This document shows positions 5,907-59,345 of a DNA stretch of 64,000 nucleotides, in pieces. Under the pieces are notes generated by a model, which was not told the DNA's origin, ran no database searches, and worked only from the letters and a program-made list of their open reading frames with translations. The stretch comes from Chlorokybus atmophyticus. Lineage: Eukaryota > Plantae > Mesostigma and Chlorokybus algae. The DNA lies in the NCBI GenBank assembly GCA_009103225.1, contig RHPI01003728.1, positions 131,719 through 195,718 of the forward strand. Reading direction: 5' to 3'. Each line of letters starts with the position of its first letter. Position 1 is the first letter of the stretch. The position numbers and the translations under genes are program-made.

Positions 5907-6755
5907 TGCCAACACAAAACCACATGTCTCAGGCAACACCTGGCTCCCCACATGACTTGGAATAATATGTTCACAGCGCATGCTCACTGAAACACTTAGC
6001 AACATTGACAGCACACAACAACCAGTCCAACATGCAAACTGTGAGCTATCGCATTGCAATCATGGCCTGTGACAATCTCTGCAAGTCTAGCAGACAACGC
6101 ACCCTGGTGTAAGCGCGAGATGCGTCGTACTGAGCATATCCATGCTGGGCATGCAGTTACCTGCAGTACAAGCTTGACACACAGACGAGTCAGTACGCAC
6201 AGCAACAACACCGTGTAACACGACAACCAAGCTACACCACCAAGCTTGCAAGAAAACTGCCAAATCAGACACTTGCAGTACGTGCGTCTCGCTTTCACAA
6301 AAACCGTTGCGAAAGTGCATTCACAAGACATAGCAACTGCACTGGGGCAATGTCTGAGGTTGACGACGTGCACGCATGAAGAACAGCAGCTTATCATTGT
6401 ATAATAGCTCTGTGTGCCTACACGTTATGTGTATACGCATTAACCAAGCTCCGTACCGCGGCTACCACGCCAGGCCAATGCAGCCCTCAGCCCGTCGCCA
6501 GCTTGAAGCCCGCCGCAGTAAGCAAGGCAGCCGGCACCTTTCACAAAAGCGAACCAAACCACAGCGAGCCAAGAGAATCAAACTGAGCTTAGTACCGCCT
6601 CACTCAATACTGTAAAGCGCCCAGCAGACAACCCTTCCCTGCTCCCGTCCAAACCCCTTCTCCTTCTCACCGTCCTCCACCTCCTCCCGCTCGTCCTCTT
6701 CGTCCTCCCAACTCTTGTCGCCTCCGCCGCCGCCGCCCCAACCTCAACCAGCAGC

Positions 6756-6763
6756 TAGGGTTT
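6756..6763 (-). promoter_or_regulatory. Telo-box (AAACCCTA) in the divergent promoter/5'UTR between the DCX gene and COX23
   Basis: TAGGGTTT on + strand next to (CCG)n/(GGC)n leader tracts. Similar motifs near 19892, 25146, 42027 and 61935. Confidence 0.55.
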
Positions 6764-6907
6764 CAAACTAGTACAAGGCGGGAAAAGCTAACCACACTGT
6801 AACGGTTCCAAGCTGTGACTCAGCCTGTGAGTCGCCAGCCAGGGTTCTGTCTCAGGTGCTGGTCAGCTGGCGGCGGCGGCGGCGGCGGCGGAAGTGGTGG
6901 CGGCGTC

Positions 6908-7554
6908 ATGCAGCAGCAGGACGTCGGGGCAAAGCACGGCGGTTTCAAGAAGGTGTCCGAGTCGTACTGCCAGGAGTTCACCGCGGCCTCCCTCAAGTGT
7001 ACGAGCGTGTTGCGTCCATGCAGCGGAGCAACTGAGCGGCTGCTTGCTTGGCTGGCATGCATTCGGTGTGACTGCGGGACGTTATCAGTAGTCAGCTGAT
7101 TGTGGTGATGCTGTACATGACGGTTTAACAGGCTGGAGATCGCTTGAGCATGCATGCTGTGTGACTGCGAGACTTGAGAACGCGATTTGCATGTCGCGTG
7201 CCTGTGAGATGTCAATGCATGTCATCTGGCATGCATGGGATTGTACCACTGGTCGTGGTCAATCATAAGTGCAACTTGACAGCCAAACAGTGTGCTTCGC
7301 GCTACAGGTTTGGACGACAACGCTTACGACGGCAGCAAGTGTCAGAAGGAGTTTGACAATTACAAACAGTGCAGAAAGCGTGAGGTGAGTACCCAGAGTT
7401 GACCGTGCTGAACGCAAACTGTGTTGTGCACATTGACTATGTATAGATCAGTCGTTGTTGCTTGGGAAATTTGGTTATTTACTCACCTCGTGTGCTTCTT
7501 GGAATGTAGAAGCAAGCACGGTTGGAGGCAAGGCGAGCTGGTGTGAAGTGGTGA
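6908..7554 (+). CDS. COX23: Cytochrome c oxidase assembly factor COX23/CHCHD7-like twin-Cx9C protein, 70 aa; exons 6908-6998, 7308-7384, 7510-7554
   Basis: Spliced product MQQQDVGAKHGGFKKVSESYCQEFTAASLKCLDDNAYDGSKCQKEFDNYKQCRKREKQARLEARRAGVKW*. Twin Cx9C spacing; C-terminus resembles plant COX23 (KKEREARLE). Canonical GT-AG sites. Confidence 0.88.
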
Positions 7555-7592
7555 CACAGCAGTTCACACTTGAACAGTACGCGCACATAGAG

Positions 7593-7931
7593 ATGAGTTT
7601 GCGTGACGAGAAGGAGAAGAGCCAAGCTAACACTTGGTGGGAGGATGTGGTGGACGGCATTTTCAGCAAAGGTTGCAATCGGCCGACGCTGTTCGCGCTG
7701 AATTGCACTCTTCTACTGCTGTTTGTGGCCGTCTCTGCTCTTGCATTTGTTACGCAAAACCTATACGGCTACGGCTTTGCTGCGCTGCACGCGGGCGTGC
7801 TGTTGATTCTGGCGGTGATTGTGTTATTTTTGGTCAACTGGTACGTTGACGCAGCGGGGATACTGGTCGATAGCAACAACAATAAGCCTGTAGAGTTGCA
7901 AGAGACTTCAACTAAGGCCAAGGCTTCGTGA
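7593..7931 (+). CDS. PKR1: PKR1-like ER membrane protein (V-ATPase assembly factor family), intronless, 112 aa
   Basis: WWEDVVDGIFSKGCNRPTLFALNCTLLLLF...VTQN...LHAGVLLILAVIVLFLVNWYV fits the remembered Pkr1 pattern (W.SIF.PG..P.L..A.N..F..L; H...L..L...+NWF+); two TM segments and a charged tail. Confidence 0.7.
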   Translation: MSLRDEKEKSQANTWWEDVVDGIFSKGCNRPTLFALNCTLLLLFVAVSALAFVTQNLYGYGFAALHAGVLLILAVIVLFLVNWYVDAAGILVDSNNNKPVELQETSTKAKAS

Positions 7932-9500
7932 TGGTGCTGCGGCGGTTTCTGCGAGCGGTTGGGCAGGCGCGACTGTTGCAGAGGTATCACGCAAATCTCT
8001 CATTTCCAGCTGTCGTGGAAGCTGCTGCGCACTTGCATAAGGCCGTCAACAAGAGTCCAGCGCAGACACGCATTGCCGTGGCTATCTCGGGTGGTGTCGA
8101 TTCGTCAGTTGCGGCTCTACTTTTCAAGCAACAGGTGATGGAAGCTACATTATATCAATCAGCATGCTGTTTGTTCGCGGATCACCCCAACACTTTGTGG
8201 GTGTTCGGGTTCTCTTGCTTGCTGTGAGGCTGAATCAAGGGGTCGACTGCAGGGTTACAATGTGTTTGGTGTGCACATGCGCAACTGGGATGAGAGCGAG
8301 GAGCGCGGGAGTGCCTGCCTGGGGGAGAAGGAGTATGCGGACGCGCAGCGCGTGTGCGAGCAGCTGCAGATGCCGCTGCACCACGTCTCCTTTGTGCGAC
8401 AGTATTGGCATCACGTGTTTGAGGACTTTTTGAATGGCCACGCACGTGGGGTCACACCCAACCCGGACCTTGCGTGCAACCGCCACATCAAGTTTGATGC
8501 ATTGCTACAGCATGCTCTGACTCTCGGGGCAGATGCTTTGGCTACCGGCCACTACGCGCGGTTGCGAATGAACAACAGCAACAACACCGTCTCGCTCATA
8601 CCTGCCTTGGACGCCTCCAAAGACCAGACATATTTCTTAGCAACAGTGCGACAATCAGCGCTACAGAAGGCTGCCTTTCCTCTTGGAGGTTTGCATAAGG
8701 CAGAAGTGAGGGCTATTGCCAAGGCGGCCGGGCTGCCAACAGCAGAGAAGCGCAGCAGCGTCGGCATCTGCTTTATCGGCAAGCGCGACTTTGCCGATTT
8801 CATTGGTGACTATGTTGACATGAAACCTGGCCGCTTTGTGTCTGTTAGCGGGCAAGACCTCGGCGCCCACAAAGGCCTGGCCGCTTACACTTGTGGACAG
8901 CGAGCTCGTATTGGTGGCGCACCACATGCATGGTATGGGCATGTTGTTTTGTAGTTCGCATATGTGCCTAACGCATATTACCTGCAAATATGGCTTGCAT
9001 GAGGACCATTATTGATGATGCTGTAACTCAGGTATGTCGCTGGAAAGGACCCTGCTATCAATGTAGTGTATCTGGCGCCTGGAGGAGAAGACGCGGCACT
9101 GTACAGCACGGCTGCAGTTACCGAGGAGTTCACTTGGATGGCTGGCCATCCGCCTGCAACCCTGCCAGTACAGCCCGGGTGGGCATACAAGTGCAAAGTT
9201 CGCTACTCGGAGAACTTTGTCAACTGCTCAATAGTGCGCCTTGGGGCAAGCCCAGATAGCACCTTATGTGATGGCGTATTGGCTTCAAGCACATTCTCCG
9301 GGTATAATGCGCGCACGGTGATTGACTTCGCTGGCTCATTAGGTGTACTGTTTGAAAGACCGGTTAGAGGTGTCACGCCAGGACAAGCCTTGGTTTTGTA
9401 TGCCAGTGATGGTGCTTGCCTTGGCTCAGCACCGATTCGCTACCAATGCAGGACTCTGCATGAGCAGAACGGCACCTTGGTCATGGCTAGCGCAGTTTAG
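7931..9500 (+). CDS. mnmA: tRNA 2-thiouridylase MnmA/TRMU with organellar presequence; exons 7931-8134, 8253-8932, 9035-9500
   Basis: PP-loop SGGVDSSVAA, MRNWD, TPNPDLACNRHIKF, ATGHYAR, KDQTYFL, SVGICFIGKR, YTCGQR, GVTPGQ. Arg-rich N-terminus MVLRRFLRAV. Confidence 0.95.
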
Positions 9501-9624
9501 GGATAGTTGTAGTCAGTTCTAGGCGTCTCTCTCTTGAGTTGTTTGGCTACTGGTTGATTAAATTAGTTTCAGATTGCTTTCAGCTTTCATCGCTCCGTGT
9601 GAGTCATACAGCAAGGATTCTCAG

Positions 9625-9669
9625 CACAACCCGCTGCACTGAAGGTGCAGCGGGTTGTGTTGCTTCTAA
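9625..9669 (+). mobile_element. Helitron-type 3' terminus remnant (15-bp perfect hairpin, then CTAA ending 10 nt downstream)
   Basis: CACAACCCGCTGCAC-TGAAG-GTGCAGCGGGTTGTG then TTGCTTCTAA; shares CAGCACAAC...GTTGTGTTGC with the hairpin at 36234. Confidence 0.45.
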
Positions 9670-20012: not shown

Positions 20013-22647
20013 ATGACGGCGTCTGTGGCGGTCGTGTCCAGGCTACAGGTGCGAAAATGTTGCTGCTGTCAAGTGCTCCTGCAGTGCTGTGCTTGTTGCT
20101 TCTGGCTATGCGACGCCGCCAACTTGTACGCGGACGAGCATTGCTTCTTTGCAGAAACGTTGCTCGCTGCACAACTGTGTGCTGCATTGCCTTGTGCTGC
20201 ACAGCCCGGAACACTCAGGTCGGAACCTTTCAAAACTTGTTGGTCGCACACAACTGAAGTCTTTTCCCTGTGCACTGGCCATGGCAACGCGCAATTTGTC
20301 TATTAGACAACCGCAGCCACGAAGTTCACGCGCATACTCAACGTTTGCACTCTCCAAAACAATGCCGATTGCGCAGGAGGTCATAGCGATCTCATACACA
20401 TGGGCCTCTTGTCGCGTTTCATGCTCATGAAAACTAGCATCCCGTTGAGTTGCACCACAGACTGGTTGTGCATACAAGCATCAAATACTGCTAGCCACAT
20501 GTGAAGCACACTCTTGTTACCAATGCATGGCACTGTGCTCAGGTTTTGGCCTCCAGAGTAAGCAACCCTTCTCCTGTGCTGACGCTCAGTGCAAAGGCCG
20601 CTGCCCAGTGTAGGCCCGTCGAAATCAAACCAGCCACAATGGTCTGCGATGCGAGCATGCGTGCTGTTCAAAGGCCGGGTGCCGTTACTGCTGCGTCAAA
20701 AGCCGTGTCCACATTGGCCGTCTACGAAGAGCAGCAGCAAGAAGGCGGCGATAATGATGAACATCAGGCACGAGTGGCATCCGGCAATCACGCTACCAAC
20801 ACTGAAGCCGGCCTCGAAAGGTACAAGTGTTAACGTTGTGTCCATTGTTGTGTTCATATGTGTGTTGATTTTTACATATTAGGCCATTGTTTTGGCGATG
20901 GAGTGGGCCCGGTGCGGGTTTTGGGGCGGGTAGCTGGCGGGAAGCTGCTGCCATGCACGGGGCGGTGGACACAGGACCGAGGCTGTGCGTGGCGCCGATG
21001 ATGGATTGGACGGACAACCACTTCCGCACGCTGTGCCGGCTGCTCACGCGTCGCACGTGGCTATACACCGAGATGGTGGTGGACCAGACACTCGTGCACA
21101 ACCCTGACAAGGCAAGTGTGTTTGCTGGTGCGCTGCGCAAGCCCCCTGGCTTACAGTGTTTGAGTTTCAATATGGGATGAGACGTGCAACTGTCGATCAA
21201 CAAGAAAAGGAACGATGTGCACCGCACTTCTATATTATGCTTTTTTGCTTGTATGTGTATGTGTAACCAATCTTGTGATGTACTGGGGTGTGCTGTTGGT
21301 AGTACCGGAGTGCTATGTAATAGGATGGGTCTCGAGTCTTGGAGTTCCATCCTGGTGTATGCTCAGCCAGTGCAGCGTGGGCTGATGTGGAGACTTCCCT
21401 GTCAAGCAGGCTCGCTTCTTGTCTTTCCCCGAGGGTCAGGGCCCGATAGTGCTTCAGCTGGGCGGCAGCAACCCCGCGACGCTGGCGCAGGCGTGTCGCA
21501 TCGCGCAGGACTTCGGTTACGACGAGATCAACCTCAACTGCGGCTGCCCGAGCGACCGTGTGGCGGGACACGGCTGCTTCGGTGCCAAACTCATGACAGA
21601 CCCAGGTGTGCATGCATGCATGCGTGCGGTGCGTGATGGGTATGTGAGCGTATGTAAGGTTCTGTTGGTGCATATCAGTGCCTGATGTTGGGTCTGCATT
21701 TACTTTGCCTGCAGGTTTGGTTGCGGAATGCACAGCGGCTATGGCAGCTGCCACCAACATACCAATCACGGTCAAGTGCCGCATCGGGGTGGACGATATG
21801 GAGACCTACGAGGAGCTGTGCAACTTTATTGAGACCGTGTCGACCAGGTCGCCCGTGCGCCACTTTATCATACACGCTCGCAAGGCCTTCCTGAAAGGCC
21901 TAAGTCCTGCTGAGAACAGAACCAAACCACCCCTCAAGTATGCCATACATTGTGTTTTCATATGTAGCTATATGTTCAATTTTGTTAGCTCAGTGCAACA
22001 TGTTTTGTCACAGGCACGAGTTTGTGTACGCTCTCCTGCGCGACTTCCCGCACTTGCAGTTCACGCTGAACGGCGTGGTGCCGGACTGTTACGAGGCGTT
22101 GGACCACCTGAGGCGCGGGGCGCACGGCGTGATGTTGGGGCGAGCGGCCTACCAAACTCCATGGCTGGCGCTTGCAGACGCGGATAGGTCCATTTACGGC
22201 TGCGAGAACCCCGCAACGAGCCGTCGGCAAGTGCTGCGCGACTATGCGGCGTACGCCAACGCAGTTAAAGAGGGCTGGTCTACTCACCCGCCGAGCATAC
22301 GAGTGCTCATAAAACCCCTCCTGGACTTGTTTTATTGTGAACCGCGCGCGAGGCGGTGGCGTAACGCCATTGACAAGGTGCTGAAAGAACGCGAAAACAA
22401 CATCCCGTTCGACGAGCTCCTCGACATTGCCCTGTGCGAGCTGCCGGATGAGGTTCTTGATGCCCCGCCGCCACATAAAGGGACCAAACCAGCACCCGTC
22501 CTGCGGGAGCTTCCCGTCACGCCGGAGTGGGTGCAACAGCGGCATGTTTTACATGGGACCGCGTTGGGGTCATCGGGTGTTGGCAACATGGACAGTGGTA
22601 ATGGCTCATTTGCTTTGCCTAGGTTAGCGGAGGTTGCTAGCTCATAG
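20013..22647 (+). CDS. dusA: tRNA-dihydrouridine synthase, DusA-like, with long transit-peptide-like N-terminus, multi-exon
   Basis: [87 protein letters not shown]. Upstream exons 20013-20048 and 20543-20820 are Ala/Ser/Val-rich. Confidence 0.93.
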
Positions 22648-51633: not shown

Positions 51634-54118
51634 TCAGACCGGTTCGCGCGGCATCATGCCACAACATGAAGCCGCACCACACAGGCAGGGGTTTGTGGGT
51701 TGAAGGTTGTCCCCAGCACATGATGTAATATCCCCGTAGCTCATGGTGAACTCCTCCCCGCTGCGCACCCGCCTGCTGGCAACCAGCGCCACCGCCGGCA
51801 CGGGCCAACCCCCGCACTCACGCACCAGCACCGCGGTCAGGTTGGGATCGCACGAGTGGTTGATGAAGCGCGCCACGTTGCCGTACCTGCGGTGGACACA
51901 TTCAGCGTGCGAGGATATCTGCACCAACGAAGCTGCATGATACGGAAACTGTGCGTGCGCACACGCACACGTGTGCGTGCACACACGCACACGTGAGCGT
52001 GCCTACTTGTGCGTGTGCGTGTGCGTGTGCGTGTGCGTGTGCGTGCGTGTGTTTGTGGGCATGCATGCGTGGTCATGGCGTGCAAGCATGTACATGTGTA
52101 CATACCATGAATGGCATATGCATCGTGGCTGACATGTGCAAGGGTATGAATACACGTGTACGCATACACAGGCACACAACACAAGGACGAGGAGGTACTG
52201 ACTGACATCTATCTCAACTGCACTGTAACTTGAACTGTTACCGTGTTGGATCTATGTTGATTCTTAGGCTGGCACCCCTGGAAGGCAACACCTCCCGCAC
52301 CACCAACACGTACAGCATCCCTCTCGTGTCGTACTCCACTTGCCGACGCCGCTGCTCCGGTGTTGTCAACAGCTCACCTGGCAGCAACACCCTGCCAACT
52401 GAGTCAAACAACACGATGCAATGCGCTAGGTCACCTCAGCATTTATACATACTCATGTGTCAGTGTTCACAAATGCATGTGTGAACATCAACATACATAC
52501 ACATGCACATACACACGCAGATGCTGTTTGCAATCGTGTGCACATACACGTGAGCACACGTGCACACCAGAGTGCTAATGATATGCGCCTGCAGCCACTA
52601 ATCCAACCGACCTCTCACCGGCGTACTCGCACACAAACTGTCCCGCCTCCACCTCCTGCGCCGCATACAGGCCCCACCCTCTACTTTCATTGGCAGTCAT
52701 GCGCACGCAGCACGCAACCGACAGGCCCCTCTGCGTGACGCGGTTGCGGCAGGACTCGAGCGAGTTGAGACAACAACAGGCCGGCCCGCACTCCCGCAGC
52801 GATGGGAGAGAGCGCACGAGGGAGGAGGGGAAGAGGAGGCCGCATGGAGTGTAGTGTGGAACGCCGGAGGGAAAGCTTAGACACTCGCATGAGGAAGGTA
52901 CGCAACCGTCCTGCATGAATGGGTCCACATTCACTGCACTTGCAATGCCTGACTATTGTCGCGCTGCTGTTGATTCTGATATCATCTGCAGAACGCATAT
53001 GATGCTATGTGTCCTTGTGATGTGCATCTTCAACCAACTGACGCTAGCCTAAGCTTGGGAGGCTATGCTTGGCGCAGCAGCAATCTTAGCAATAAAACTG
53101 ACTTTGACGACAATGACGACAACGACGACGACGACAACAACAACAGCAACCATTCGTCACCTGGCATTGGCAACCATCGCCCGCTACAGTGCTATCCTTC
53201 TTTGGCAGCTCTTTGCCGCCAGCGAGCACGCAGCGTGTAACATAAGCTCCCCACATCGGAGGATACCGCTCCGCGCTTTCATCATTGACGCAGCTGCATG
53301 AACTCAATTGGTTTCAGGAATGAGTGCAACGGGCGTGGGGGCCACTTATCAGACCATGTTCAAGTCCATATGGTGCAAACGCTAGCACTTACCGCACGGG
53401 TATTGCCTCCAAGCCTGATGTGATGTCAGCAGCGCGCTCATCATGCAACGCACGCGCTGCATTGGCGAAGAGCCTGCTTTATATGTCTGTATGAGTGCAT
53501 GTGAGCTCGTGTGCAATGCATACACATGGATATCTGCATGCGCGCATGCTAGCATGTCTGTTCGTGCATATGTGCGTGTGTGGATGAGTACATCTCATGC
53601 CTTGTGGAGGCAAACCATGTGACTGCTAGCCAACAAGTTGGGGTTTGGTACACCACTACTACACTGCGGCAGTGTGAAGCACACAACCTGTTCATGCATA
53701 ACTACAGACAGTGCAATGACAGGCACCGCACTGGTGCCTTCTTACTTCCATGCCCTCAAGTCTGATATCTTCAAAAGCTGCGCCCATACATGACTGCCAC
53801 CACGTTTGGTTGAACTCACAGACCGATGCTCGCATGCAGAAGCACTTAGGACAATCTCACACAACTACAATGAAGACGGCGTGACACAGCAAGCAGCAGT
53901 TAATGTGCCCACTCATCACCATCGTCAACATTGCCGTAGTCACCTTACCTGCACGTCAACGCCGCCTGCGCGAGATCCTGGCGCTGGTCCAGCTGCGTCA
54001 GCACCCGCCGCCAAAGCTCCAGGGGAAGCAGCACGCTGGCTTCCTCCCCTCTTCCTACTGCTCCTCCTCCTCCACCTTGTCCTCCTCCGCTGCCGCCCAT
54101 TACTTTCTGCGCCTTCAT
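51634..54118 (-). CDS. SUVR3: SUVR3-like histone-lysine methyltransferase (F-box-like N-terminus, pre-SET, SET, post-SET), multi-exon; start approximate
   Basis: LPLELWRRVLTQL..LAQAALTCR; AADITSGLEAIPVRCVND; ECGPACCC..CRNRVTQRG; RGWGL; FVCEYAGE; GNVARFINHSCDPN; EFTMSYG; CLCGAASCCG. Confidence 0.85.
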
Positions 54119-54469
54119 TACCCCACCAACACTCTCACCCCGGCGGTAGTGACGACGACGACGGAGGAGGAGGAGTTGTCGCTGGGAGGCAGCTACCAGG
54201 CGGAGTGGCTTACTGACTTGCAGCTTCCTGCTGTTCAAAGGGTTATGTTGTTGCTGGGGCGGGGGTTGCTCGGTGCATAGCAGTGACGAGGAGGAGCTGG
54301 AGCTAGAGGTTGAGCTGGTGGTTAAGCCTGAGGAGGACAGCACTCATAGCCGCTGCTACAGTACAAGTGCCTAGGCGTTTGCTGCTGGCCCCAACGCAAG
54401 CTTTATAGAGGCGTCGTGAAAAGGCCGACAAAGGGGCGAAACAGCGAGCTGGATATTTCATCAGAGCTG

Positions 54470-55316
54470 ATGAACAGGCTGGCTGTCTTCGCTGTGTTCT
54501 GCGCCATTGCTAGCTTCCCCGGGGTAAGCAGCTACGCAACAACACAATAAACTACCAAGAGAAATGTACATACTCCGAGTACTAAGCACCAGCAGCAATG
54601 CACAGTCCAGAAGTTGTTTTCGCTGTTCGTGTTGCCTTCTTGTGTGCCCAACTCTGACGTAGTGCTCCCAGCTTGCTGTATGCAGGTGTTGCATAATACT
54701 GCTGAACGCCATGTGACCAGCCTGCTGCTGTGTCTCAGCTGTGTCAGCATTTGGCATGCCCAGGGCAACTGTAGTAGTACACGCGCATGTAGGCCAGCAG
54801 ACAGCGCGCGCATATCTGCCTGGCTGCTGGCCATACACGCGCATAGGGCCTATGTGCGTGTACCACTGCGAGGAGATATAAAAGCATGCAACTCTCAACA
54901 ATTACTACACAAGTAGCTAAAGCCAGTAGGTATAACTGCAGACACAGTGTACACTTGAGGCCGTATGCAGCACGCACATACAGGCCATGAAGGCAAACAC
55001 AAGACAAGATTATGTGACAAAGTCGGTCCCACCACACACTTGCAGGGTGTTTGTGGGACTGTCCTCTTTACACACAAACAGGATGACTGGATTGAATTAA
55101 TGTTGTTGTTGTTTCTTCATGATCTGCAAGGACAACACCTGCAACGATGATTGTGTTGGCCAACAGGTGCTGTATTTCTTCGAGGTGGTACCGGCGCAAG
55201 TGTGCATAGGGTTGGTGATGGCGCTGACTCTTGCTGCTCGCATCTTCATACCCATGGCTATCTCAGACAGCGAGCACAAGGCCGACAGCAAGGCAGTCAC
55301 CAAGAAGCAGCAGTGA
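54470..55316 (+). CDS. Putative small multi-pass membrane protein of unknown function; tentative exons 54470-54523, 54686-54852, 55131-55316
   Basis: ATG just after the divergent promoter; strong GTAAGC donor; phase-0 joins give an open hydrophobic frame ending ..VCIGLVMALTLAARIFIPMAISDSEHKADSKAVTKKQQ*. No family recognised. Confidence 0.38.
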
Positions 55317-57705: not shown

Positions 57706-58466
57706 CGTACCGCTAACCTTTGCCCTCAACAACCTCGCCGCCCCGTAACGCAGAACGTAACTCACCTAGCAGGTTACAGTATGCGATACGTGTTCTGATA
57801 CGCATACCGTACCAGAGCGTCTTTAAGTTACCAATGGTCAATATCAACTCCAAGCTGCGACAATCGGCGGCCAGCATTTGATATCTGTGGCGCCATGCGC
57901 CTCTTGAGTTTCAGCAGCGAAATGCCCGTCCGCGTATAGCGGCGCTACGTAGTGCGGAATGTGCAACGCGCGCGCGCGTCTCTGCCAAGCAAGAAAGTGT
58001 GAGCGACAACCGCTTGCTCAGAACAAACGCTTCTTCAGCTGAGCGTGTGCAACGTTTGGTTGTTGTGGCAGCGTTTTCTGCTTGGTGAGACGGCGCCGCG
58101 CGCTGCGAGCTAGCCGGGGTGTCCCGCGGTGGGGCATCGCAGCCAACGTGATTTTCCGATCGCTGCTGCGAGTGACTCATCCGTTTTCTGGTGTGTGTTT
58201 GGCGGTTTCTCGAAACGTGGTCGCGATATCCGCTTGCTGAGTGTGATATAGCGCTCATCTGCCCACGTCGATATACTGCTCAGCGTTGCGCTCGCCTGTG
58301 GCGGGAGCGTGTTCGAGGCATTGGCGGGCGCGGCGGCGGCGGCGGCGGCGGCAGGCGCGGAGGGGAGGTTATTGTAGGCGTGGGAGCGTAGCATCAAGTC
58401 ACTTAGGAGGTATTTTCCACCGCCGCCGCCGTTGCAGTGGGGAATAGAATAGAGTCGCCTGGCGCA

Positions 58467-59345
58467 ATGGCTTCGCGTGCAGAAAGGGCCGCCAAGAGGG
58501 CTAAGGTTGCTGAGGTACGTTTTGCTCTCCCCCCGCCGCTGGGCTTAGACCGTGCCGTGTTGTTGTTATTTGTGGCAATGTCTACGGGCTTCTGCAGCCA
58601 TTGTTATGGGCTGCATGCCGTGAGGCACCCTGCCGCACATGGCTAAAATCTGTTTGCCGCGTCCATTTGCATTACGTACCAAAGCGTTACCTCTGAGCTC
58701 TCAAGTCCCGCAAAAACTACTGCATTGTCGTTGTGGCATTGCTTGAGTGTATGTATGAGCATGCACTGAGGATGCTGGCAGGGGCAGGACGGTATCCCAA
58801 TTTCGCCGTCGCCCAAGAAGACGAAGAGGACGCCTTCAAAAGTTGAGGCGGCCGCCGAGGCTCCTGCAGCTGACGGTGCAGAGGTGGAAGTCAACGTGAT
58901 TTCTGGGAAGGAGGAGACCACCAAGAAGGACGTGGAGATGATTCAGGCTGACAATGGCGACAAGCCTGCCGCCATTGCGGAAGAACAAGCAGCCAAGTCT
59001 GTAGATGTAAAGCCCTCAGAAGAAGAAAACAAGCCTGCAGAGGAGGACAAGCCTGCTGCCGTTGATGCTGCTGAGGAAGTGAAGCCCTCAGAAGAAAGTA
59101 AGCCCGCGGAAGAAAGCAAGCCTGCTGCGGCAGAAGCTGCGCCTGCCGAGCCAAAGGAGACAGCAGCTGAGGAGCCTGCTGCTGTTGCTGCTGCTGAAGA
59201 GAAGCCTGCCGCTGAGGCTGCTGCCCAGGAAGAGAAGCCTGCTGAGTCTGTCGCTGCTAGCGAGGAGAAGCCTGCAGAGGCGAAGTCTGCGGAGGAGAAG
59301 CCTGTAGAGGAGAAGCTTGCAGAGGCTGTCGCTCAGGACAGCTAG
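58467..59345 (+). CDS. Acidic Ala/Glu/Lys/Pro-rich disordered protein; exons 58467-58514, 58782-59345
   Basis: MASRAERAAKRAKVAE / GQDGIPISPSPKKTKRTPSK.. then EEKPA(A/E)E repeats to TAG; canonical splice sites; open frame. Confidence 0.78.

Follow-up and report, generated by a model that had tools for sequence, protein, structure and literature searches.

A spliced RNA joining COX23-like, PKR1 and MnmA reading frames in the streptophyte alga Chlorokybus atmophyticus, with AUG depletion ahead of the last frame

Results

Three reading frames on one spliced RNA

Spliced RNA of the early-branching streptophyte alga Chlorokybus atmophyticus joins three open reading frames (ORFs) in series: one for a COX23-like protein, one for PKR1 and one for the mitochondrial tRNA 2-thiouridylase MnmA/MTU1. 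The locus lies on the forward strand of a 64,000-nt stretch of contig RHPI01003728.1 (assembly GCA_009103225.1, positions 131,719 to 195,718; hereafter “the window”, whose first letter is position 1 in all coordinates below). The RNA ahead of the MnmA start codon is strikingly poor in AUG, and the PKR1 stop codon and the MnmA start codon share a single base. We consider it probable that 6836-9632 is one transcription unit that yields a three-ORF spliced mRNA, with leaky scanning as the main route to the downstream proteins.

The existence of RNA joining all three ORFs was established with the RNA contigs of two runs from different studies, denoted X1 and X2. Approximately 64% of the sampled words of 6700-9600 were present in the two runs, the share to be expected if the RNA is spliced. 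A single X1 contig of 2096 nt extends from 6836 to 9582 and lacks four GT..AG introns. The X2 contig (882 nt) extends from 6920 to 8346, lacks three introns and connects ORF1 and ORF2 to MnmA exons 1 and 2. The GT..AG joints of ORF1 (6998/7308 and 7384/7510) were seen in contigs of both studies, and the MnmA joints (8134/8253 and 8932/9032) are likewise supported by RNA contigs. The adjoining upstream RNA contig terminates at 6737/6738. The features of the locus are as follows.

6836-9632, + strand: candidate tricistronic unit with three ORFs in series (COX23-like, PKR1, MnmA)
6836-6907, + strand: 5' leader of 72 nt, with no ATG and with a (GGC)n run; its start is given by the X1 contig end only
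6908-6998, 7308-7384 and 7510-7554, + strand: ORF1, COX23/CHCHD7-like twin-CX9C (CHCH) protein of 70 aa; stop codon TGA at 7552-7554
7555-7592, + strand: spacer between ORF1 and ORF2, 38 nt, no ATG
7593-7931, + strand: ORF2, PKR1, 112 aa, intronless; stop codon TGA at 7929-7931
7645-7701, + strand: stray ATG-initiated ORF of 18 codons, out of frame with PKR1, ending 230 nt before the MnmA ATG
7927-7991, + strand: predicted RNA hairpin enclosing the MnmA start, its basal stem pairing CGUGAUG with UAUCACG (weak evidence)
7929-7933, + strand: TGATG, in which the PKR1 stop and the MnmA start (ATG at 7931-7933) share one base, the A; a 1-nt overlap of different frames
7931-8134, 8253-8932 and 9032-9500, + strand: ORF3, mitochondrial tRNA 2-thiouridylase MnmA/MTU1, 450 aa
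9501-9632, + strand: 3' untranslated region (UTR); contigs end at 9582 (X1) and 9632 (X2)

These data are assembled short-read contigs and not single molecules, such that neither the exclusivity of the joined RNA nor its true 5' end follows from them. We infer that single mRNA molecules carry all three ORFs, to the exclusion of other forms, that each ORF is translated and that ribosomes reach the later ones by leaky scanning. The same property of the data lends itself to a different account, in which MnmA, PKR1 or both are expressed from separate, overlapping monocistronic transcripts that start inside the upstream gene, the spanning contigs being assembly merges: contigs reveal neither transcript ends nor single molecules, and in the Coccomyxa and Chlorella annotations, MnmA and the PKR1-like ORF are two distinct genes. 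Between ORFs that lie 38 and -1 nt apart, however, there is no intergenic room for separate promoters. Under this account, a depletion of AUG limited to the region before MnmA would lack an explanation, and PKR1 and MnmA are also joined in transcript contigs of three other organisms (see below). We therefore regard separate transcripts as quite unlikely.

In the upstream 1.1 kb of mature RNA, the X1 contig matches the window at every position. It differs at two positions, both in MnmA exon 1: 7996 T>C (synonymous, Asn) and 8039 A>G (Lys37Glu, in the presumed presequence). These differences suggest that X1 derives from a slightly different strain or allele. Both upstream stop codons (7552-7554 and 7929-7931) lie far 5' of two exon-exon junctions, 8134/8253 and 8932/9032. 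Because termination so placed would be expected to provoke nonsense-mediated decay of the mRNA, the arrangement raises the question of how the RNA escapes it.

AUG depletion ahead of MnmA

The initial annotation had held that the spliced COX23 coding sequence and the following spacer contain no internal ATG, that PKR1 contains only one, and that base composition would predict several. This ATG count proved exact. The 661 nt of mature RNA from 6836 to 7930 contain three ATGs: the ORF1 start (6908), the PKR1 start (7593) and an out-of-frame triplet at 7645. No ATG is formed across any splice junction of this upstream RNA, ORF1 has no internal ATG in any frame, and not one of the 180 residues encoded by ORF1 and PKR1 is an internal methionine. 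The ATG at 7645, opening a short ORF that ends 230 nt 5' of MnmA, is of the least harmful kind.

How unusual is this scarcity? Base composition predicts 10.8 ATGs in 661 nt (Poisson P(<=3) = 0.006). On the same RNA, the density is 4.5/kb before MnmA and 19.2/kb within the MnmA coding sequence (26 ATGs in 1353 nt). Nor is the density typical of coding sequence in this genome, the condition under which the initial annotation would have been refuted: all 50 open stretches of at least 150 aa in the window are denser, with a median of 19.1/kb and a minimum of 7.1/kb. Among genomic windows of 661 nt, those with three or fewer ATGs make up 0.19% on the + strand and 0.08% on the - strand. Codon choice points in the same direction. 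Codon pairs that could spell an out-of-frame ATG through synonymous choice do so at 1 of 20 sites upstream, as opposed to 19 of 38 in MnmA (Fisher p = 0.0005). For NAT endings (His, Asn, Asp and Tyr codons before G), the corresponding figures are 1/14 and 16/25 (p = 0.0007). The AUG depletion is thus real and confined to the region before the last ORF, and it fits selection that keeps downstream starts reachable by scanning ribosomes.

Avoidance of AUG along the whole of both upstream ORFs argues for leaky scanning, since a scanning 40S subunit meets AUGs and an elongating ribosome does not. In the mechanism that we favor, ribosomes would load at the cap and scan, and a share of them would initiate at the AUG of the COX23-like ORF. 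The remainder would leak to the PKR1 AUG, and a further share would leak on to that of MnmA. Such leakage could work because, whatever the frame, hardly any other AUG has been allowed to persist in the 661 nt before MnmA. The 1-nt TGATG overlap would then represent an extreme shortening of the inter-ORF spacer and not a dedicated coupling device. Judged by general rules, the context of the MnmA AUG is the most favorable (G at both -3 and +4), the two upstream starts having no G at +4.

Experimental precedent for this mechanism comes from Auxenochlorella protothecoides, in which leaky scanning was shown by in vivo mutagenesis of Kozak sequences and AUGs (PMC11892635). There, a stronger ORF1 start lowers the output of ORF2, and a single AUG put back into ORF1 abolishes it (PMC11892635). 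The inter-ORF size is 0 in 5 of 43 curated loci of that alga; overlapping stop and start codons are mentioned, and green-algal bicistrons having such overlaps are counted among the leaky-scanning loci (PMC11892635).

Several considerations weigh against this interpretation. A contig that spans two genes does not prove one transcript, and the RNA data are short-read contigs. A dinucleotide-preserving shuffle gave a borderline result (mean 6.4 ATGs, P(<=3) = 0.054), albeit in a conservative test, as the counts of the AT and TG dinucleotides stay fixed. Of the codon-level controls, the synonymous-site contrast supports the depletion, but a within-gene synonymous permutation did not reach significance (P = 0.10), as codons of the offending kind are almost missing from the upstream genes. 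In relatives, the synonymous-site contrast was not significant (3/19 vs. 25/113). All three upstream AUGs have a purine at -3, which makes them “adequate” and not weak by the general rule. Finally, ribosomes must leak past three AUGs to reach the third ORF, and MnmA output would accordingly be low.

The region 6500-6907 runs from the tail of the preceding transcript across the intergenic gap and through the 5' leader, and none of its 408 nt belongs to an ATG; it is C/T-rich and carries the (GGC)n run at approximately 6869-6893. Elsewhere in the window, 661-nt stretches with no more than three or four ATGs occur only at 53871-54599 (+ strand), 57896-58607 (+ strand) and 20886-21593 (- strand). 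Considered as possible upstream ORFs, these three were set aside: they look like ordinary low-complexity or intergenic DNA.

Start contexts and the stop-start junction

The start contexts are gtcATGc for ORF1, gagATGa for PKR1, aggATGt for the triplet at 7645 and gtgATGg for MnmA. Only the MnmA start combines G at +4 with a purine at -3. The support that these contexts lend to leaky scanning is modest.

The TGATG at 7929-7933, in which the PKR1 TGA overlaps the MnmA ATG by one base, is present as the initial annotation had described it. That annotation had also entertained coupled reinitiation at this sequence: PKR1 would be translated, the ribosome would stop at the UGA, and a retained 40S subunit would restart at the overlapping AUG, making this the main route to MnmA. 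The overlap itself speaks for such a mechanism, as do the near-zero PKR1-to-MnmA spacers of two relatives, contigs L092 (1 nt) and L081 (6 nt). After termination, a 40S subunit can resume initiation at an AUG close by, which may explain some local AUG depletion (PMC11892635), and UGAUG-type cellular cases have been reported in human mRNAs (PMC3923131).

Other observations run counter to reinitiation. PKR1 is 112 codons long, and the efficiency of reinitiation drops with ORF length, as is generally known and as argued in PMC11892635. According to the authors of the algal study, reinitiation could explain depletion only near the ORF1 stop (PMC11892635); it does not predict AUG avoidance that covers both upstream ORFs and reaches as far as about 1 kb (genomic distance) from the junction. 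The drop in ORF2 output upon strengthening of the ORF1 start in A. protothecoides (PMC11892635) likewise tells against it. No TGGGA (motif 1 of the termination upstream ribosome-binding site, TURBS) occurs in 7800-7931, i.e., the 130 nt before the junction, a search that does not exclude other tethering motifs. Nor is the overlap conserved: the PKR1-to-MnmA spacer is -1 nt in Chlorokybus and, besides the two near-zero values, 42 nt in Auxenochlorella and 76 nt in L088. The gene pair is conserved; the geometry of the overlap is not. Coupled reinitiation is therefore unlikely to be the main route to MnmA, and TGATG does not hold up as a functional coupling element. Of the earlier proposal that selection keeps the downstream ORFs reachable, the part that stands is the one that leaky scanning accommodates. 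A minor reinitiation route at the UGAUG may nonetheless operate alongside leaky scanning.

A predicted hairpin (7927-7991) would pair the stop/start overlap. The minimum free energy for 7880-8000 is -45.5 kcal/mol (z = -2.16), and 3 of 200 shuffled sequences fold as well; the evidence for this structure is weak.

We also asked whether MnmA might start at an AUG farther downstream, the initial annotation having named this as an alternative. The ATG at 7931 is the sole in-frame ATG ahead of the PP-loop motif SGGVDS, and a functional, AUG-initiated MnmA must hence start there. The spliced model is 100% identical over 450 aa to the public Chlorokybus model jgi/Chlat1/1358 (eukprot), which confirms the window as Chlorokybus DNA, and has the same start codon. 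A downstream start is thus contradicted by both lines of evidence.

Identity of the encoded proteins

By Pfam, all three ORFs belong to genuine protein families: CHCH, Pkr1 and tRNA_Me_trans. The CHCH domain was found with exon 2 of ORF1 alone (E = 8.4e-7). The best match of this exon in the PDB is the COX23 orthologue, human CHCHD7, at a weak E of 0.17. Both CX9C motifs are kept in ORF1, and its frame is intact across two introns. The COX23 label of the initial annotation, as judged on exon 2 alone, is thus plausible but not proven: the domain and the twin CX9C motifs agree with it, but the CHCHD7 match is weak.

ORF2 matches Pfam Pkr1 (PF08636) with E = 3.7e-7 and 30.6 bits, against a gathering cut-off of 27.7. 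This is a family of endoplasmic reticulum (ER) membrane factors for V-ATPase assembly. Neither an exact look-up nor a word search of public protein collections returned an exact or related entry for the PKR1 ORF. PKR1 thus seems to lack an annotation in the public Chlorokybus gene set, even though the collections do include the MnmA model from this locus. The PKR1 relatives described below were reached through MnmA.

ORF3 contains the domains PF03054 (tRNA_Me_trans), PF20259 and PF20258. Bacterial MnmA can be aligned only from about residue 40-48 of this protein, which marks the algal N-terminus as an extension; its first ~45 residues (MVLRRFLRAVGQARLL...) would most simply constitute a mitochondrial presequence. 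When metagenomes were scanned with MnmA exon 2, all loci recovered were MnmA genes of bacteria that lack introns, and no PKR1 or COX23 match accompanied any of them.

Could the upstream ORFs instead serve mainly as translational repressors of MnmA, in the manner of long upstream ORFs (uORFs), with dispensable protein products? Any upstream ORF reduces downstream initiation, and the algal literature has termed ORF1 a “large protein-coding uORF” (PMC11892635). However, both upstream ORFs match curated protein families above or near threshold, the COX23-like ORF preserves its frame and its motifs as noted, and PKR1-like sequence is conserved across distant algae. A purely repressive function is, in our estimation, very improbable.

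The PKR1-MnmA pair in relatives

In A. protothecoides, UTEX250_A02.02855 and UTEX250_A02.02850 form a curated, high-confidence bicistron (PMC11892635, Dataset S01). ORF2 (UTEX250_A02.02850) is an MnmA-like thiouridylase with a mitochondrial transit peptide, and ORF1 (UTEX250_A02.02855; 291 nt, 96 aa) was described as an ER/transmembrane protein without InterPro annotation; the 5' UTR is 71 nt, the spacer 42 nt, and no AUG is found before ORF2 (PMC11892635). We found that this ORF1 (our locus L091) is PKR1-like: it has the MWLEDVLLGAL...GVN motif, and its exon 2 matches Pfam Pkr1 with E = 0.0026.

In Chlorella vulgaris (L093) and in Coccomyxa sp. Obi (L090, where the product is flagged as Pkr1), a PKR1-like ORF likewise immediately precedes MnmA and has its orientation. 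The same holds for contig L096, whose flanking genes resemble those of the Auxenochlorella locus. In transcript-like contigs of three green-lineage organisms (L081-L087, L088 and L092), the two ORFs are joined; the PKR1-like ORF of L088 scores 27.9 bits against Pfam Pkr1, and the junction in L092 reads TAGCATG. In L088 and L092, the ATG density before MnmA is about half of that in the MnmA coding sequence (7.9 vs. 18.2/kb and 6.9 vs. 14.3/kb, respectively). No PKR1 orthologue has an internal methionine. The sequences L081-L087 are 77% G+C and contain only four ATGs in 2 kb, which makes AUG depletion impossible to assess there.

The pair was not found in L094/L095. In the liverwort Riccia, the 6 kb preceding MnmA yielded no PKR1. 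A COX23-like ORF upstream of the pair was found in none of the relatives examined. In an MnmA tree from a quick search only, the MnmA proteins of L081, L088 and L092 fall inside the green-lineage clade, separate from Chlorokybus as well as from Mesotaenium plus Riccia. Judged from these sequences, the PKR1-MnmA linkage spans both green divisions; on present sampling, the COX23-like ORF and the 1-nt overlap are particular to Chlorokybus.

Contig L092 displays two further peculiarities. An additional ORF of 66 aa (78-275) precedes its PKR1-like ORF; it has no Pfam match and no cysteines, and L092 may thus exhibit another three-ORF arrangement with a different first gene. In addition, the PKR1-like ORF contains, at 549, an ATG that shares the frame of MnmA (annotated start, 579). 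MnmA of L092 could start at this ATG, 10 codons earlier, and would then overlap PKR1 by 29 nt.

Discussion

The Chlorokybus locus extends a green-algal rule, several proteins per nuclear mRNA, to a streptophyte near the base of the land-plant line. The linkage of PKR1 and, after it, mitochondrial MnmA in both green divisions would reflect either an ancient origin or repeated selection for a small ORF on a longer mRNA. We put forward a broader proposal, tentatively, as one that falls just short of being probable: that the PKR1-MnmA mRNA predates the split of Chlorophyta and Streptophyta, that leaky-scanning polycistrons, including those of three genes, are regular in early-diverging streptophyte algae and not peculiar to chlorophytes, and that PKR1 is a recurrent passenger ORF before unrelated genes. 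If this is true, PKR1-MnmA is one of the oldest conserved nuclear polycistrons of the green lineage.

There is a practical aspect to these findings as well. The collections searched contain MnmA of this locus but not PKR1; small conserved genes of streptophyte algae are thus probably being lost to annotation pipelines that allow a single ORF for each transcript. The locus also offers a compact, natural three-ORF design for asking how far leaky scanning reaches and how stop codons 5' of two exon junctions escape nonsense-mediated decay.

Comparison with known systems

Viral termination-reinitiation employs UAAUG or AUGA overlaps together with a TURBS element, as in caliciviruses and influenza B M1/M2. 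Chlorokybus shares with these systems the overlapping stop and start codons. In contrast to them, it has no 18S-complementary UGGGA upstream, its AUG depletion extends over whole upstream ORFs, and its overlap is not conserved.

A closer likeness is found in the chlorophytes, where nuclear polycistronic mRNAs have been documented (Gallaher et al. 2021, PMC7896298) and their translation by leaky scanning demonstrated (Duenas et al. 2025, PMC11892635). Like those polycistrons, the Chlorokybus RNA has several conserved ORFs on one spliced mRNA, a short AUG-free leader, strong AUG depletion before the downstream ORF with normal AUG density in the last one, and an order that begins with a small ORF and ends with a long one; some chlorophyte spacers are likewise very short or zero. 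The differences are that Chlorokybus is a streptophyte, whereas the surveys covered chlorophytes only, and that it has three ORFs, as compared with two in the curated sets; the present case is known from sequence and RNA contigs.

Among individual loci, the A. protothecoides bicistron is the most similar, with its PKR1-like ORF1, mitochondrial MnmA-like ORF2 and lack of AUG before ORF2; it has a 42-nt spacer instead of an overlap, and no COX23-like ORF lies upstream. In Chlamydomonas reinhardtii, PKR1 (Cre03.g152505) again takes the upstream place in a curated bicistron, and its frame contains no internal AUG, but its downstream partner is a SET-domain protein (Cre03.g152500) and the spacer is 70 nt. 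The CDC26-TTM3 bicistron, which land plants and green algae share (cited in PMC11892635), comprises different genes and persists as a pair in land plants, whereas PKR1 was not found in the 6 kb ahead of MnmA in Riccia.

The literature searched contained no mention of a nuclear polycistron in Chlorokybus, and the algal mechanism paper is silent on streptophytes (PMC11892635). Already known are the leaky-scanning mechanism and, in a curated list, the pairing of MnmA with a small ER protein (PMC11892635). New are the streptophyte host, the finding that ORF1 of the Auxenochlorella bicistron is PKR1-like, the wide distribution of the PKR1-MnmA linkage, the COX23-like ORF at the front and the 1-nt overlap. 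It is thus well supported that the Chlorokybus locus constitutes a new example, and not a new mechanism, of how green algae place several proteins on one nuclear mRNA.

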